64,000 nt of DNA. Source: Oikopleura dioica (taxonomy: Eukaryota; Animalia; Chordata). The stretch is taken from NCBI GenBank assembly GCA_907165135.1, contig OU015568.1, positions 1,922,001 to 1,986,000 on the forward strand. Reading direction: 5' to 3'. Below the pieces are notes generated by a model that was not told the DNA's origin, ran no database searches, and saw nothing but the letters and a program-made list of their open reading frames with translations. Below, piece by piece: positions 16,138-43,206 of this stretch. The translations under genes were made by a program, and so were the position numbers. Within the stretch, counting starts at the first letter, position 1; every line of letters starts with the position of its first letter.

Positions 16138-18346
16138 TTAGCAACGCTTGAAATAGTAGTCGACTGATTTGTCCGATCGAACCGGTTGATTGTAGTAGGG
16201 ATCCTGAATTCAAAAGATTAGTGACGAAGAATCGGCTAAATGAAATTGAGGAGACTTACGAAGCGATTCTCCATGCCGATTTCGTCCTGTCGAGGCGTCA
16301 TGTAAGCAGGCCCGATCGAAGAAGGAGGCGGATACATGCTTGGGGCGGCGCTTGGGGCCATTCGAGAACCTGCCTGAGGCGCTTTTTCAGGTTTTTCGAA
16401 GGTTTATCTATTTTAATTTCTGAGGATCGTTATAATAGGCCCGTACAAAAAGATCTTTCTGGATACCGTCCCAGGTTAACTCCACAGGTCTGCATAGTCT
16501 GGCTGTTCGAAAAACCTGTGCCTGAAAGAAGCGGAGCTGCGTCTTCTTCTTCTTGTGCCTTTGCCCTGGCTGCTCTGTGCTTGGCCATCGGTCTGGAAAA
16601 CTTTTTGTTGAGGAGACTTCTGTTCGCGGAAAGAATCATCGCGAAGTTTGCATATCCTAAGATTCAGGGATAAATCATCGTCAAAGTTAGTTGATTAGGG
16701 CTTACCGAGCATGAGAACACCTGCTGCAACGAGGGATCCAATAAAAAGACCGTATGGGAGATGATAGTGCTCGCAATACTCTTCCAAGTCACCGTAAGGA
16801 TCTGTTTCTGCCGCTCTTGGCCCTGAATTGACGGTTAAGATTCAACGGATTAAGTTTTGACTGTAGTACCGTCTCCGCAGATCTTGCCATAAGCTTGGCT
16901 TCTAGTATTTTTGAATTGGACGATTCCCATTTGAACCAAATCGACGCAGATTTCTGAGTAGACTCCGTTGTCAAAGTTTCGGTCGAAGCGATCGCGACAT
17001 CTTTCTTGAACCATTCGGTAGTAGTAAACCCCTGAATAATTTTTATTCATCCGTTCTTTCCCCAGTTCCATACCTAAAGCATTGAATCCCATAAAGAGGC
17101 TCCATCCAATGATGCCAACATACGCGCAAATGATCAAAAAGACCGAGCAGCAGATTCCTCCTGACGTACTTTTGCACCCTTCATATGTTCGGTCAATCAA
17201 GCAGTCTATTTTTTTTCTTACCTCTAGTCGGACTTCTGAATTCTTTGGAACTGGCGGTTCCGTCGACCAACATTGCGATAGCAAAAGCGACTGTCAGTGG
17301 CGCGATCGCGTACATACAGTACTTCAGTCGCTCAGTCACCATTGGCCAGTAATTTCCAGGTTTGTCCGGGTCCAGAAGTCGCCACTGGCCAGTTACAGAG
17401 AGAATCCATTCTGGCTCTGGATCTGTAGCGGGATTACCGTCGTCGGGGCCGTATTCCAAGAACAGTTTCGTCGTCTAGAAAGGAGTTTTGATAAAAGTAA
17501 ATAACTGAAGAAAAGAAAAAGTTTAAAATCTTCTCATTTTCCTCCCTAGAAATTTAGAGACGCTAAATACATCAATTCTTAAAGTCAAAATAAAATCAAA
17601 AATATCTTATTAGTATTTGTAGATTTTAAGGAAATGGTAAAATTGTTTTTCCTTGGCGTAATCTACTAATCTCATCAAGAACTCTGCATTCGCCCCTGTA
17701 TTCTCGATATTCTTTGATTTCTAGAACGATCTTCAAGAGATGAAAAAGGGATAAACAAAAACATTTTTCCCCTTAAATCTCTATAATCGCGTTCTAGAAA
17801 TCAAGGAATATGGAAATTCAGAGGAAAAGGCATTCATTTTCGATGGAAAAAAGGCGATTACGACGCGAAAAAGAAATTTTAGCTTTTTATTAAAGTCTAC
17901 AATTGTTAATTAGATTTTGGGGATCTTATATTGACTTTGAGTATTTTCATAATTTCCGTTTCTAGGGACGAAAGAAAGAGGGCGACTGAATCTTTTCAAT
18001 TTTGGCCTAATTCATCGTTTTTGAAAGCGAACCTGATCGATTCCCATAACGCCACAAACAGTCCAGGCGCAAATGCCAATGATGACCATGACGAACGCGA
18101 AAATCGATGCACAGGGAGTCTTATGCGCTCCTGTGCAGCAGCTTATGCAGCAACTACAGCACCCTGCATCTGGCTTCTTTTCGATTACTTTTTCAATTCA
18201 TGAACCGTTCTTTTCTATCAAAAACAGCTCGAAAATGGTTTTGATGAATTTCCTGGAGTGGGTTTAAATTCGTCCCTGTGGTCGTAGAATTCTGTCACAT
18301 CTCCTTCTTCATTTATGTCGTACCCGCGATAGCCATCGTCTGTCAT
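16138..18346 (-). CDS. Myelin proteolipid (PLP/DM20/GPM6) family tetraspan protein
   Basis: Cys-rich N-terminus GCCSCCISCC...TPCASIFAFVMV and four TM segments. Also GGICCSVFLIICAYV, ICVDLVQMGIV...GKICG and the final TM LFIGSLVAAGVLMLGYANFAMILSAN. The first intron needs a GA donor. Confidence 0.85.
17701..17810. repeat. ~110 bp hairpin repeat (MITE-like); related copy at ~20764-20880
   Basis: TATTCTTTGATTTCTAGAACG...CGTTCTAGAAATCAAGGAATA form inverted arms. The left arm recurs at 20764 (TTCTCGATATTCCTTGATTTCTAGAACG). Confidence 0.65.
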
Positions 18347-19376
18347 TTCTGAAGCGATAAATTGGCATTTTACTAATTTTTAAAAGTTATTTCAACAATT
18401 TAATTAGGTTAGTAGTTTATTTAAGAAAGACTTATTCTTTTGATTCATTTTACAAGTAAATATAAATTATATTTAATATTTTCTTAGGAATTGTGAAAAA
18501 ATTTACGGAACTGAAAAAGATTCTATTTTGATAAATCATTTTAAAATTGGGTAAAATACGGCGTAACGAGCATTTTGAAGGATTTCAAAACAGAAAAGCA
18601 GGAATTTTTTTATGATTTCTTCTTTTATCTTCTTTAATTATCTCTTCCAAAAAAAGGGGGTAAGAAGTAGCAGATCAGGTCTTTCTTGTTTCATTATATT
18701 CTTTTCTCATTTTGTCAAAAAATGCGCTGGAGCGATGAAAAAGCGCATAATTAGCTACGCCTGAGGATTGGGCGACCCTAGCGCGCCCTGGCCAATTGGG
18801 CTGCTGCGACTTTTTTCAAAAAATTAGGGTTGATAGACTCGATCGAAAAGTGCTAAGATTGAATTTTGCGTTTCTCTCTCACCATTTCTGTGAATATTGA
18901 TTTATATAATAAAAATATTTTTATAAATAAAATTAACTATTATTAAATTTCGTAAAATAATTAATGGTTTTTTGAAAGAAATAATAGAAAGTGTCCTCTC
19001 TGTTTCTATCAAATTGATAATCAATAGATAAATTGAGTGGTTTTAACGCTTGAGCTGAAGGGCGAAAATGAAGAAAATCGTCTACAGACTCTTCGTTGTT
19101 TTCAGCGCGCGGCGCTTGAAAACGCTCAAAACAAAAAATGAGAAGGGTTGCTGCAATTTCATGTTCGGCTGGCTTTGGCTTTTGAAGCCACGGATTCAAA
19201 CAGAGATTTCGACGACTACTACGATTATGACAGTTACGAGGGCATTTCTGACGCGATTAGGATGCCTTGTTGTAAGAAAAACTCGAATCAAGATGCATTT
19301 CTTCGCCTTGTCCGTTGAAAGATCGAATGAATGTTTTTCAACAGATCGCTTCGGAAAGATACAGTATCGAATACCA

Positions 19377-38426: not shown

Positions 38427-39151
38427 AAAATATGTCAATTCATATTCACCAACTAAAAGATCCCGACCTACTATCCAAGCATGAAAATCCCAAAAAATAT
38501 TCAACCTTTCCCGGCTGGTCCCGGCTCCAACTTAAACTACTATCAATACATCATAAATGTATCATGTAAAACCTATGTCTTCAAACTTGATAAAAAAAGA
38601 GCCAACTGGGTATTTTGATAATTCTCCTATCTTCCATTTTAGTTCCTCATCATATTTATTACTATCTACTTTTATTTTTTCATATCTCAACAAAACCATA
38701 AGTTCAAACTAATGTGAAAATTTCATCCCTCCGCCCCCGGTTTTAGCCAAATTCATGGATTAAAACTAGATTCCAATGAGTCATTACTATTGACTCATCT
38801 CTAATGACTCAATTAACTAATAAATGAGTCATCAAATACTGTATATACGAAAAAACTCACTGTAACGTACTGTACCTACCGCTGGTTCAAGAGATTGCTC
38901 AAGGACCTAGCTGCTTATCAAAAAAAAAACATTTATTATAATTTATAAATTATTATTATATTTATAAGCCTGGCTCATTCCGCCGTTATTTTGAACACAC
39001 CATCTCACTTCTTCTTCAGTGCCTTTTTCGGGTGTGTGGGTCACCGGTAGACCCGTTTTCTCCGCGCCTCACACCTTCTACCTCACCTTTAACATAAAAA
39101 TAAATAAATAAAAATAAAGCAAAATGTATTCAAATTCATTCAATACAGGTT

Positions 39152-40410
39152 TTAAAATGGTCTTTTGCACATCATAGTTTTGATACTTTCCGGCTCCCTC
39201 ATCGTCTCATCAAGCCAGGGGTATCGAATAAATAAGGTGCAATCATCATCGTTGCATTCAACCCAGTCGAAAAGGTCTTTGCTGATTTCAGTACAGAGGA
39301 GTTGAATGCTGTCCGACTAGAATCAATTATTTTTATTGAATAGCTCAAAAATTTACCGATTTTCGCCATGGCTTTTAGTTCCTTATCTTACCGCGGCAAG
39401 AGTATCGAAGAACGTCTCCCTCAGAGAAAGAATCAAATGAATCAATTTCGTCTTCCCAGTCGGAAGTGTTTATAAAAAGGACCTGCAAGTAAGCATTCAA
39501 TCCAGCAAACACATCGGATATATTCCGGCATTGTTTTTTCTTTTCTGGGACGCAGATAAAATTTCCTTTTGAAGACCTCGACTTGAGGGACCATTTCCTG
39601 TTAGACATCAGTAGCGGCATAAGATCTTCGTTGAAATTATCAAAGCAAATCGCTGTAGCATCACTTATCGACAAGCCAAGCCACGTGGATGTGAACGAGT
39701 TTTCCAATAATATATCAGCCACTTCTTCATTTTCCTGTATTGTCTTTGGCGAGGGAAGTGTACCGCCAAGGAGTTTGCAAACTGCTTCCGCAGCATCATA
39801 GGGAAGTGGGACCGAAGAAATAGCGACGCCGCTGTGCTCGATATTGATGATTTTTCGAAGCGTATTTTCGTCAAAATTTACTTTGAAATCAACATTCAGC
39901 TCATCGAACTCGGTTGTATTAAATTTGCCACGAATGCTTCCTTCAAAAATCGATTTTATACCAGCATCCTTGTCATTGTCTCCCCTACTAGTAACCGTAG
40001 GTTCACCATACTCATCACTTTCGTCGTCCATACTATTCCAGTCTTGATCCTTCTCGCTGTCTGGTATTCCATCACCATTATCATCATCGTCTTTAAAATT
40101 AGGGATTCCATCAAAGGCGTCGTCGTCGTCGGTATCGGGAATTCCATCACCATCATCATCATAGTCGAGTTTGTTAGGGATTCCATCACCATCATCATCC
40201 TCAGAAACGTCAGGAATACCATCATTGTCATCATCATTGTCAAGATTATCGGGAATACCATCGCCATCAGAGTCGAGTCCATAACCACGTGACACTAATA
40301 ATTTCAAAAGTTTTAAGTGATCTTGTGAACTCACCTCGTCGAATCTCTTGATTGTCGTTTAGCGCAGCTATGCCAGCCAGCAGTGTTGCAAATAATGTCA
40401 ACCAGATCAT
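39152..40410 (-). pseudogene. Paralog A: secreted protein with DxDGDGIPD Ca-binding repeats + CTL-like + Cys-containing C-terminal module; in-frame TAA near the 3' end
   Basis: Signal peptide MIWLTLFATLLAG, about six DGIP(D/N) repeats and a CTL-like region (PYDAAEAVCKLLGGTLP...TSTWLG...FICV). TAA at 39375-39377 aligns with TAC in paralog B, while the downstream splice sites and last exon stay open. Confidence 0.6.
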
Positions 40411-40666
40411 TTTCTAGTAGAGAAACTCGTTAACTCTAATGATTAGAGTCTAATCTCTTTTTTTTTCTTATGAATAAAGTAATCCCAAGTTAATTCAGAA
40501 AGTAAAACTATTTATTTGATTTTCAAATAAGTCGATTTCAGTTTTGAAAAAGAACAAGATTAGCAATTATAATCATCCTTCCTCAGCATCTTTCTTTTGA
40601 CGCTGGACATAAAATAAACAAACGAGCATCGCAAATATTATTTGGATTTTATTTAAATTTCGGGAT

Positions 40667-42471
40667 CTAATAAGGTTTGTTGCACATCATAGTTTGGATA
40701 CTTTCCGGTTTCATCATCGTCTCATCGAGCCAGGGGTATCGAATAAATGAGGTGCAATAATCATTATTGCACTCGACCCAGTCAAATCTTTCTTTGTTGA
40801 TTTCAGTGCAGAGGAGTTGAATGCTGTCCGACTTAAAATCAATGATTTTGAAATGGACAGACCTATCGAAGTTACTTGTTTTCGCCAAGGTTTGTATTTT
40901 CTGATCTTACTGCGGCAAGAATATCGAAAAACGTCTCCTTCAGAAAAAGAATCAAATGAATCGATTTCGTCCGATTGCCAGTTGGAATCATTTTTAAAAA
41001 GGACTTGCAGATAACCATTGAGTGAAAAAAACACATCAGATATATTCCGGCACTGCTTTTTCTTTTCTCGGACGCAGATAAAATGTTCTTTATAAGCTTT
41101 ATTCGTGAGGGACCATCCCCCGTGAGACGTTAGAAGTGGCATTAGATTTTCTTTGAAATTCTGAAAGGCAAGCCCTGATGATTTCAGAAAAATTTTTGCG
41201 GGTCTGAAAATCGTAAAAATTCTGAAAGTGCAGTTTTCTTCAGCTTGTTGAGACGAGTCGAATGGTGGGTCAAACTCTTGATAACTCCAAGGATTGACCG
41301 GTTAACCGGCTTGTTACCGGAAAATACGTTTCCGCTCGCCGTTTTTGTTCTAGAAATGCTAAGATGATGAATGAACCCGGAAACTGATCCTTATGGTCAG
41401 TTCTACTATGGGCAAAAAGATATTGGTCAAATATATAGCGAAACTTTTTTTAACGATAAAAATTCTAAATTTTGTATGTATTTCGTTGTTGCTGCACCTT
41501 CCTAATTTTCGGTCCCATTTTCATAAGAAAATAGAATTTTGGTGATAAGCATCTTATGGTTAGAGATATGATTCTCATTTTTTCACCCACACAAGAACTA
41601 ACTTCAAGGACCAGTTTCCCGCTTTTTTTGTCATTCTAGCATTCCTAGAACAAAAACGGCGACCGGAAATGTATTTTCCGGGAAATTGCCGGCTAACCGG
41701 TTAATCATTGGAGTCATCAAAAGTTTGACCCATCATTCGACTCGTCTCGACGAGCTCAAGAAAACTGCACTTTCAGATTTTTTATGATTTCCGGACCCGC
41801 AAAAATTTTTTTGAAATTATCCCTGTAGCATCAGCAATCGAGGTGCCAAGCCATGTGGAAGTAAACGAATTTTTTCGTAATATCTCAGCGACTACCTCAT
41901 TTTCCTGACTTGTCTTTGGCAAGGGTAACACTCCCCCAAGGAGCTTGCAAACTGCTTTAGCAGCATCATATGGAAGCTTGACGGAAGAAAAAACGACTTT
42001 GTTTTGCTCGATATTGACCAATTTTCGAAGCGTATTTTGGGTAAAATTAACTTTGAAATCAACACGAAGGTCATCGTTTTCGTCAGAACTGACTTTTCCA
42101 AAAAGGTGTCCTTGAAACATCGTTTTCATTTCAGCATCATCGTCGTTGTCCTCGCTACTAACAATTGTGGGTTCACCATTTTCTATACCATCCGAACTTC
42201 CGTCAAAATTTTTTCGGCAGGTTGCACAGCAGTAAGTGGAAAATTTGGAATTTGGAGAGCAGGCTTTCTCGTTTCTTCCAATTCTTTCGCAATCGACGAA
42301 TCTGTCGGTGCATGATGGATCGACTGAAATAGATTTTTTTATGTCTGCTTGAAACTAAAAAGAAACAACAAAGACGTTTGGCCTACCTTCGACTGCGACA
42401 TTTTCGAAGTCGCCACTACTCTCTTGACCTGCTATTCCAGATAGTGTTGCCAATAATGACAACCAGATCAT
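40667..42471 (-). CDS. Paralog B: secreted protein with ShK-like six-Cys module + CTL-like + same C-terminal module
   Basis: Signal peptide MIWLSLLATLSG, then CTDRFVDCERIGRNEKACSPNSKFSTYCCATC, then PYDAAKAVCKLLGGVLP...TSTWLG. It is colinear with paralog A; the frame is restored by removing 41175-41822. Confidence 0.8.
41177..41821. mobile_element. Non-autonomous TIR/foldback element (MITE) forming an intron of paralog B
   Basis: Imperfect inverted arms of ~200 bp (GATGATTTCAGAAAAATTTTTGCGGGTC... versus ...GACCCGCAAAAATTTTTTTGAAATTATC). Flanked by direct repeats: CCCTG at 41173-41177 and 41821-41825, or CCT if the terminal G/C is counted in the TIR. No internal ORF. Confidence 0.92.
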
Positions 42472-43206
42472 TTTGAAAAGAAAAAAAAGAACCAGTAAAG
42501 TCTCTTTTTTCTTTTGAATAAAGTTTTGGCACCTAAATTCAGTAAGAAAACTATTTGTTTGATTTTCAAACATGTCGAGTTCAGTATGAACTCAAGAAAA
42601 GCTCGACAGAATATGTCATTACTCCTCAGAATCTTTCTTCTTGACGGTTTTTAATTTCTATTTCGAATAATCAGATACTGGCCTTAATTATCATTTTTGA
42701 ATAAATTTACCTTCTAAGAGGGCTTTTTTTTATAAATGGCTCATTTTAAATGGGTCATCTTTTCAAATTATAGCTCATTTACATTCGCGTAGATTTTTCC
42801 AAAAAATTAAAACTATTCCCTTTTTTCTACTCATCAAAGCCAGAAATTCAGGAAAAGACACCTTTCAAACATTATTTATGTTTTAAGAGAAGCGCTGGGA
42901 TAAATATTTCAGTCGATTTTCGTCATTTTCAAATTTGGCGCCAGGGAGATACAATCCTGGTGTATCACTCCACCACCAATTCTTGAGCCCCTCTTGCCCC
43001 GCGGCCAGGATCGCCTGTGCTTTTCTTAATTCGAAAGTTAGAGTTAAACACTTAGAGGAGAAAAAAGATAAAGACGTATTATATTCCAATATTTGCAAAT
43101 AACAAATTCCGTCCGGGCAAATAACTCCGCCCTTGTTTGCCCATTGTAATCTGCTCATTTTTTCGATGTTCTATCGTTTGTTATAAAAAAACAGTATCGT
43201 AAAATA

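Follow-up and report, generated by a model that had tools for sequence, protein, structure and literature searches.

Non-canonical introns of Fritillaria borealis derive from miniature inverted-repeat transposable elements (MITEs) (Henriet 2019), and in algae introns have been born from transposons that co-opted their target-site duplications (Huff, Zilberman and Roy 2016), both as recounted in PMC11282704 and PMC13326754. Here we describe a locus of Oikopleura dioica at which an intron may have arisen by a similar route. The genome is that of OKI2018_I69, of the Okinawan lineage (GCA_907165135.1), and the window, the whole stretch of DNA analysed, covers 64,000 nucleotides of contig OU015568.1; locus L001 of that contig reproduces window positions 29152-50410 exactly, in reverse. 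The minus strand carries two tandem paralogs that encode lectin-like proteins. The coding sequence of the upstream one, paralog B (42471-40667), is broken by a non-coding foldback MITE in its C-type-lectin exon, within the lectin-like domain; its neighbor, paralog A, is unbroken there. We find that a transposon genuinely inserted here, duplicating its target site, and that it did so after the A/B tandem duplication. Removal of exactly 648 nt, beginning with GG and ending with AG, would restore the B reading frame. That the insert is spliced out as a GG-AG intron and that B is still functional is plausible, unproven and, on the features of the DNA, slightly short of an even bet.

The F. borealis introns resemble the insert in B in several respects: they occur in the same animal class, they stem from MITEs at lineage-specific positions in coding exons, and they have non-GT termini and inverted repeats that pair the ends. 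Their removal is ascribed to a U2-type spliceosome whose specificity is relaxed, and a U2 spliceosome is likewise what we propose for B. They differ in that their ends are mainly AG-AC or AG-AT, that thousands have been verified from RNA and that the U2AF genes are duplicated, whereas B presents one GG-AG candidate, unusually long at 648 nt and known from sequence alone. The introners of Micromonas and Aureococcus, as summarized in the same sources, share with the insert in B an origin in a DNA transposon with inverted termini, the use of a short target duplication as a splice site and a removal that restores the open reading frame (ORF). Introners, however, carry one of the two splice sites themselves and occur within genes in nearly identical copies, numbering in the hundreds to thousands, with GT-AG or GC-AG ends. 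In the B element both dinucleotides would come from the target, and two copies were seen, 74.5% identical, the other being non-genic. Nonconventional introns of euglenids, as described in PMC11282704, likewise have non-canonical borders, inverted repeats that join the ends and duplication-like repeats at the junctions, but they are excised through a non-lariat pathway after the conventional introns, and nothing in B suggests a non-spliceosomal route. The bringing together of splice sites by a hairpin has been proposed both for the F. borealis MITE introns and for those of euglenids (PMC11282704). The insert in B is thus another candidate, as yet unproven, for an already known route of intron birth from transposons.

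Direct repeats shared by B and A are spaced 1515-1522 bp apart to one side of the insert and 2170 bp apart to the other, and the step from 1522 to 2170 bp means that B holds exactly 648 bp more DNA than A. Pairwise alignment shows A to be unbroken where B holds the insert. An earlier note on this DNA had proposed that the adjacent paralog preserves the intron-less ancestral state, and A bears this out, as do three more relatives recovered by exhaustive HMMER searches: g8460 (P0121) and g8465 (P0127), two further paralogs encoded on the chromosome of A and B, and the MERC transcript P0122, a relative from a marine metatranscriptome. A, g8460, g8465 and P0122 are all unbroken at the homologous site, g8460 and g8465 at the DNA level too, so B alone carries the insertion and the ancestral state is the unbroken one. 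Apart from the uninterrupted site, the structures of the genes g8460 and g8465 showed nothing relevant.

On the gene strand the interrupted region of B reads GCTA(CAGGG)ATAATTTC...GAAATCAT(CAGGG)CTTGCC, with the duplicated target in parentheses. An equally valid parse takes the duplication as the 3-bp AGG and gives the element the termini G...C; the earlier note had offered both parses, and both hold. The inverted-arm element of 643-645 bp that it had placed inside the B coding sequence is confirmed; its arms align without gaps over 245 nt, are 83% complementary (27 transitions and 14 transversions make up the 41 mismatches) and stand 155 nt apart. Folded as RNA, the insert forms a single long hairpin with an energy of -346 kcal/mol; against shuffled sequences this gives z = -28, far in excess of chance expectation. 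The largest internal ORFs of the element are at most 50 amino acids long; the two longest on the plus strand have no Pfam match, and Rfam gave no match inside the element. With inverted repeats, a target duplication, a dispersed copy and no transposase, it is a MITE of the foldback type. No autonomous partner was found, and the termini GATGATTTC together with a 3- or 5-bp duplication fit no superfamily that could be named with confidence.

Left in place, the element ends the B reading frame at a TAA 14 codons inside it (41784-41782), the stop that the earlier note had reported, and the unspliced product terminates in ...ADATGIISKKFLRVRKS. The 648-nt candidate intron takes in the final 2 nt of the first duplication copy, then the whole element, then the opening 3 nt of the second copy. 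Its exact removal is predicted to join ...GCTACAG to GGCTTGCC and to yield ...ADATGLAFQNF..., collinear with ...DATAICFDNF... of A, whose homologous codons run uninterrupted in the alignment, as had been claimed. The in-frame restoration read by that note also stands: when two GT-AG introns are removed as well, B is an intact ORF of 349 amino acids (a coding sequence of 1047 nt). Its predicted product has a signal peptide, a Cys-rich module described as ShK-like, a domain resembling C-type lectins and a further Cys-rich module at the C-terminus; the match to Pfam Lectin_C, at E = 5e-4, falls slightly short of the curated cut-off. The features of the locus are collected in Table 1.

Table 1. 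Features of the A/B locus, in window coordinates
Feature	Position	Strand	Remarks
Candidate GG...AG intron, 648 nt	41175-41822	-	Frame and collinearity with A regained on removal
Non-coding foldback MITE, 643 bp	41178-41820		645 bp (41177-41821) if termini are G...C
Inverted arm beside candidate acceptor	41177-41421		3' arm in sense RNA
Inverted arm beside candidate donor	41577-41821		5' arm in sense RNA
Target-site duplication copy	41173-41177		CCCTG on plus strand, CAGGG on gene strand
Target-site duplication copy	41821-41825		CCCTG on plus strand, CAGGG on gene strand
Paralog B exon 1: ATG and signal peptide	42387-42471	-	
Paralog B intron, GT-AG, 63 nt	42386-42324	-	
Paralog B exon 2a: Cys-rich module, then first half of C-type lectin domain	41823-42323	-	
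Paralog B exon 2b: remainder of lectin-like domain	40876-41174	-	
Paralog B intron, GT-AG, 44 nt	40875-40832	-	
Paralog B last exon: Cys-rich C-terminal module and stop codon	40667-40831	-	
Paralog A	39152-40410	-	Public gene OKI2018_I69.PAR.g8964 (P0001, 100% identical)
Uninterrupted homologous site in paralog A	39659-39645	-	Sequence comparison with B

The first step in the course of events is established: a non-autonomous foldback MITE entered the lectin-domain exon of B, in the Okinawan lineage and after the A/B duplication. The target, CAGGG, resembles the proto-splice site CAG/G, and its duplication accounts for both element ends reading CAG/GG. The GG donor and the AG acceptor would then both have been supplied by the duplicated target, not by the element, whose own contribution would be confined to intron positions +3 onward and -4 backward. 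Pairing of the 245-nt arms would set intron position +2 against -3 and draw the splice sites together. Given the reported use of G-N donors, mainly GA, in O. dioica, the U2 spliceosome could cut out the 648 nt exactly, and B would continue as a full-length secreted lectin-like protein; the insertion, on this proposal, would have persisted with the ORF intact because B still yields that protein. GG-AG is reportedly among the O. dioica intron classes of Denoeud 2010. About 10% of O. dioica splice sites belong to minor non-canonical types, among which GA-AG is abundant (PMC7072748), and in OKI2018_I69 11% of introns are non-GT/AG and the median intron length is 49 nt (PMC8008620).

When ~105 kb of the OKI2018_I69 genome was searched, the element was found once more in full, at L018:18056-18691 on the chromosome that carries B (OU015568.1, in the pseudoautosomal region, PAR). 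This second copy measures 636 bp, is 74.5% identical to the window copy over its whole length, has arms that are 94% complementary and has a perfect target duplication on its flanks, CCATG (CATGG when read on the opposite strand; span with duplications 18051-18696). It sits centrally in a short palindrome (GGTTCGCG...CGCGAACC); no gene is called at its site and no flanking ORF is broken by it. Compared with metagenome contigs, the conserved arm core matched 15 marine contigs (L002-L016; JGI series Ga0115008_ and Ga0209092_), which carry a young foldback MITE family of ~733 bp with 93-100% identity among its copies. This young family has in common with the window element only the terminal 88 nt, at 80-84% identity, and all its ends begin with GATGATTTG. 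One complete copy, L010:2484-3216 (733 bp), has 272-nt arms that are 97% complementary. No clean target duplication was seen at that copy, an 8-bp hAT-like duplication (6/8 matches) and a TTA duplication both being unconvincing. It directly follows a donor-like site, GTAAGA, and is probably inside an intron. With a second copy that has its own duplication and a related young family, the element belongs to a real transposon family. Long-armed foldbacks seem common in the DNA of this organism; an unrelated one (L013:3-809; 215-nt arms, 91% complementary, 377 nt apart) adjoins a copy of the young family.

The duplications of the two copies, CCCTG in the window and CCATG in L018, are each followed by TA, which hints at a CCNTG target from two sites only. 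A wider likeness between the two target sites turned out to depend on gapped alignment; when the comparison is anchored on the duplications, only CCNTG and TA are common to both. The 12 independent flanks of the young family are AT-rich (AAT, ATA, AGT, ATT, TAT, AAA, TTA, TAA, ACT, TTT, CTT and TTA), and neither AGG nor CCT is among them. These observations weaken the suggestion of the earlier note that the family is a self-masking intron generator: the L018 copy at CCATG provides no AG and is non-genic, and the young-family ends lie in AT-rich flanks. The expected bias toward AGG or CAGGG targets was likewise not seen in the second copy or in the 12 related flanks, a very small sample, and the sole other copy found, being non-genic, does not coincide with an intron. 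Only the CAGGG variant, with G on the gene strand, gives an AG acceptor. The splice-competent ends at B are better explained by the chance of the target, possibly filtered by survival, than as a property of the family. A more general reading holds that in O. dioica, with its relaxed G-N donor rule, any transposon landing on a CAG/G site becomes an instant intron, with splice sites supplied by the duplication and clamped by the inverted-repeat hairpin, and that this is a main source of the GN-AG introns, ~11% of those in the species; we consider it unlikely. Under it, the present locus would be an aged survivor of the process.

The age of the insertion was estimated by aligning the four arms of the window and L018 copies, with the L018 copy as outgroup. 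Twenty-four differences are concerted, with both arms of one copy set against both arms of the other, and together with the 94-97% complementarity of the L018 and L010 arms this suggests that the arms were near-perfect when copied. The window arms carry 32 private changes, 9 on the acceptor side (~3.7%) and 23 on the donor side (~9.5%), against only 7 in the L018 arms. The window copy has thus decayed by ~4-10% per arm since it was inserted, and the insertion looks old. Set against the A-B synonymous divergence of 0.51, the age of the insertion would be about one third that of the A/B duplication. The unevenness of the two window arms (9 versus 23 private changes) has a binomial p of 0.02. The idea that this asymmetry is common to the window copy and to relatives derived from RNA reads was rejected, the reads on each arm having come from different families.

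Several measures bear on whether B has remained under constraint. Between A and B the ratio of nonsynonymous to synonymous divergence (dN/dS) is 0.37 for the whole coding sequence, 0.48 for the part upstream of the insert and 0.29 for the part downstream; it spans all the time since the duplication and so does not single out what followed the insertion. When replacements are polarised by three outgroups, 14 fall to the A lineage and 11 to that of B. B has thus not accelerated, and it holds the residues conserved in the family at least as well as A. With the insert removed, the 1047-nt coding sequence of B contains no stop and no frameshift. In a neutral simulation that placed substitutions on this sequence at the observed transition/transversion ratio, the probability of remaining stop-free was 0.29 at 3% divergence, 0.14 at 5%, 0.07 at 7% and 0.03 at 9.5%, and by interpolation ~0.2 at the 3.7% of the acceptor-side arm. 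The intact ORF suggests continued constraint, with p ~0.03-0.2 according to the age used, and is not decisive.

What the DNA provides directly in favor of splicing is a pair of admissible dinucleotides, CAG/GG...CAG/GG, in the register in which removal of 648 nt restores the ORF. By arithmetic, the AGG needed for a G...AG register occurs in only ~5% of random 5-bp duplications. A number of points weigh against the proposal. The coincidence of the target has to be discounted, the locus having been chosen since it fits, and restoration of the frame is automatic, as taking out any element with one copy of its duplication restores it. The donor context, CAG/GGATAA, is weak, and 648 nt is 13 times the median intron length (49 nt). 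Mismatches in the stem show no bias toward G.U on the sense RNA (12 G.U versus 15 A.C), so there is no sign of selection on the hairpin. Within ~130 nt there are 131 in-frame, stop-free GN-AG pairs, 22 of them GT-AG. The age estimate, moreover, presumes arms that were near-identical at insertion. B is absent from the public annotation, in which no gene is called between window positions 40411 and 43206, and no protein or fragment spanning the junction was found in a collection of 5.8 billion sequences. Reads from four runs labelled with the species, three of bulk poly-A RNA (X4-X6) and one single-cell (X1), were placed on 38900-42700 at 90% likeness and gave zero depth over all exons of A and B. 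The runs likely come from another cryptic lineage and the stretch holds no positive-control gene, which makes this zero uninformative; none of the RNA runs listed covers the stretch.

The only reads placed were partial matches of 90-95% on the arm cores (41207-41264 and 41737-41769). Their unmatched ends carry the consensus of the young metagenome family (GATGATTTGAAAAAAC...) or of a third relative, and the presence of that consensus in the RNA of X4-X6 means that the young family is transcribed in a sample labelled O. dioica. The public annotation was made with AUGUSTUS using RNA-seq intron hints and accepted non-canonical introns (PMC8008620). B was left out of it despite a signal peptide, two GT-AG introns and, with the element removed, an ORF of 349 codons. 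A protein search restricted to this region returned paralog A only, and the downstream piece of B had no match; exhaustive HMMER searches for B orthologues gave only distant paralogs. The results of the first protein search were dominated by acidic thrombospondin-type repeats.

Much of this would be expected if the MITE simply broke a redundant paralog, silencing or truncating B, with the ORF still open by chance or with arms that were imperfect from the start. This is a serious possibility, to which we give only a little less probability than to splicing. The missing annotation and the lack of any RNA or protein trace agree with it, as does a stem without G.U bias; stop-free survival is not negligible (0.07-0.29 at 3-7% divergence), and dN/dS cannot split the periods before and after insertion. 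Yet the decay of the arms suggests long residence, during which 349 codons have acquired neither a stop nor a frameshift. The family-conserved residues kept in B, at least as well as in A, and the downstream dN/dS of 0.29 also speak against a plain disruption.

B might instead be expressed with the element skipped through other, partly canonical sites, giving in-frame variants with an altered lectin domain. The donors GAG/GTAGTC (exon end 41896) or CGG/GTCCGG (41797) could then be joined to the acceptor-like CTTGCCTTTCAG/AAT (exon start 41160), and the many in-frame GN-AG pairs counted above, GT-AG pairs included, leave ample room for such choices. The CAG codon of B at 41163-41161 is derived (GAT in A; Glu or Asp in the outgroups) and creates a pyrimidine-rich AG 14 nt past the insert. 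These variants would, however, remove or replace conserved residues, the F-x-N-F motif included, and the first AG past the element is that of CAG/GG; we regard this explanation as improbable. The same strong acceptor-like sequence, CTTGCCTTTCAG/AAT (41160-41172, minus strand), could also act as a competing or back-up 3' splice site. Least probable of all, and very much so, is that the insertion is a haplotype- or assembly-specific state of the single male sequenced, with an empty site on other chromosomes. The PAR is diploid, which would allow this, but arms that differ by 17% and 32 private changes point to an old event.

Paralog A has a peculiarity of its own, an in-frame TAA at 39377-39375 (minus strand) in place of a Tyr conserved in B, g8460, g8465 and P0122. 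The surroundings read ..KIRN(stop)KPWRKS in A versus ..KIRKYKPWRKQ. The public model g8964 bypasses this TAA by adding a GT...AG intron and a mini-exon of 15 nt, with the loss of ~41 conserved residues. A may be an impaired copy, or the g8964 model may be an artefact; if A is impaired, the importance of B would, speculatively, rise.

If the insert in B is not spliced, it amounts to an ordinary insertion that has broken a redundant paralog. If it is spliced out as a GG-AG intron, the locus would offer a dated before-and-after pair for the birth of an intron in a chordate, with the empty paralog adjoining the occupied one, and the donor of both splice sites would have been the duplicated target and not the element. 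Splicing of the insert would also tie the GN-AG introns of O. dioica to transposon insertion, as has already been shown for Fritillaria.

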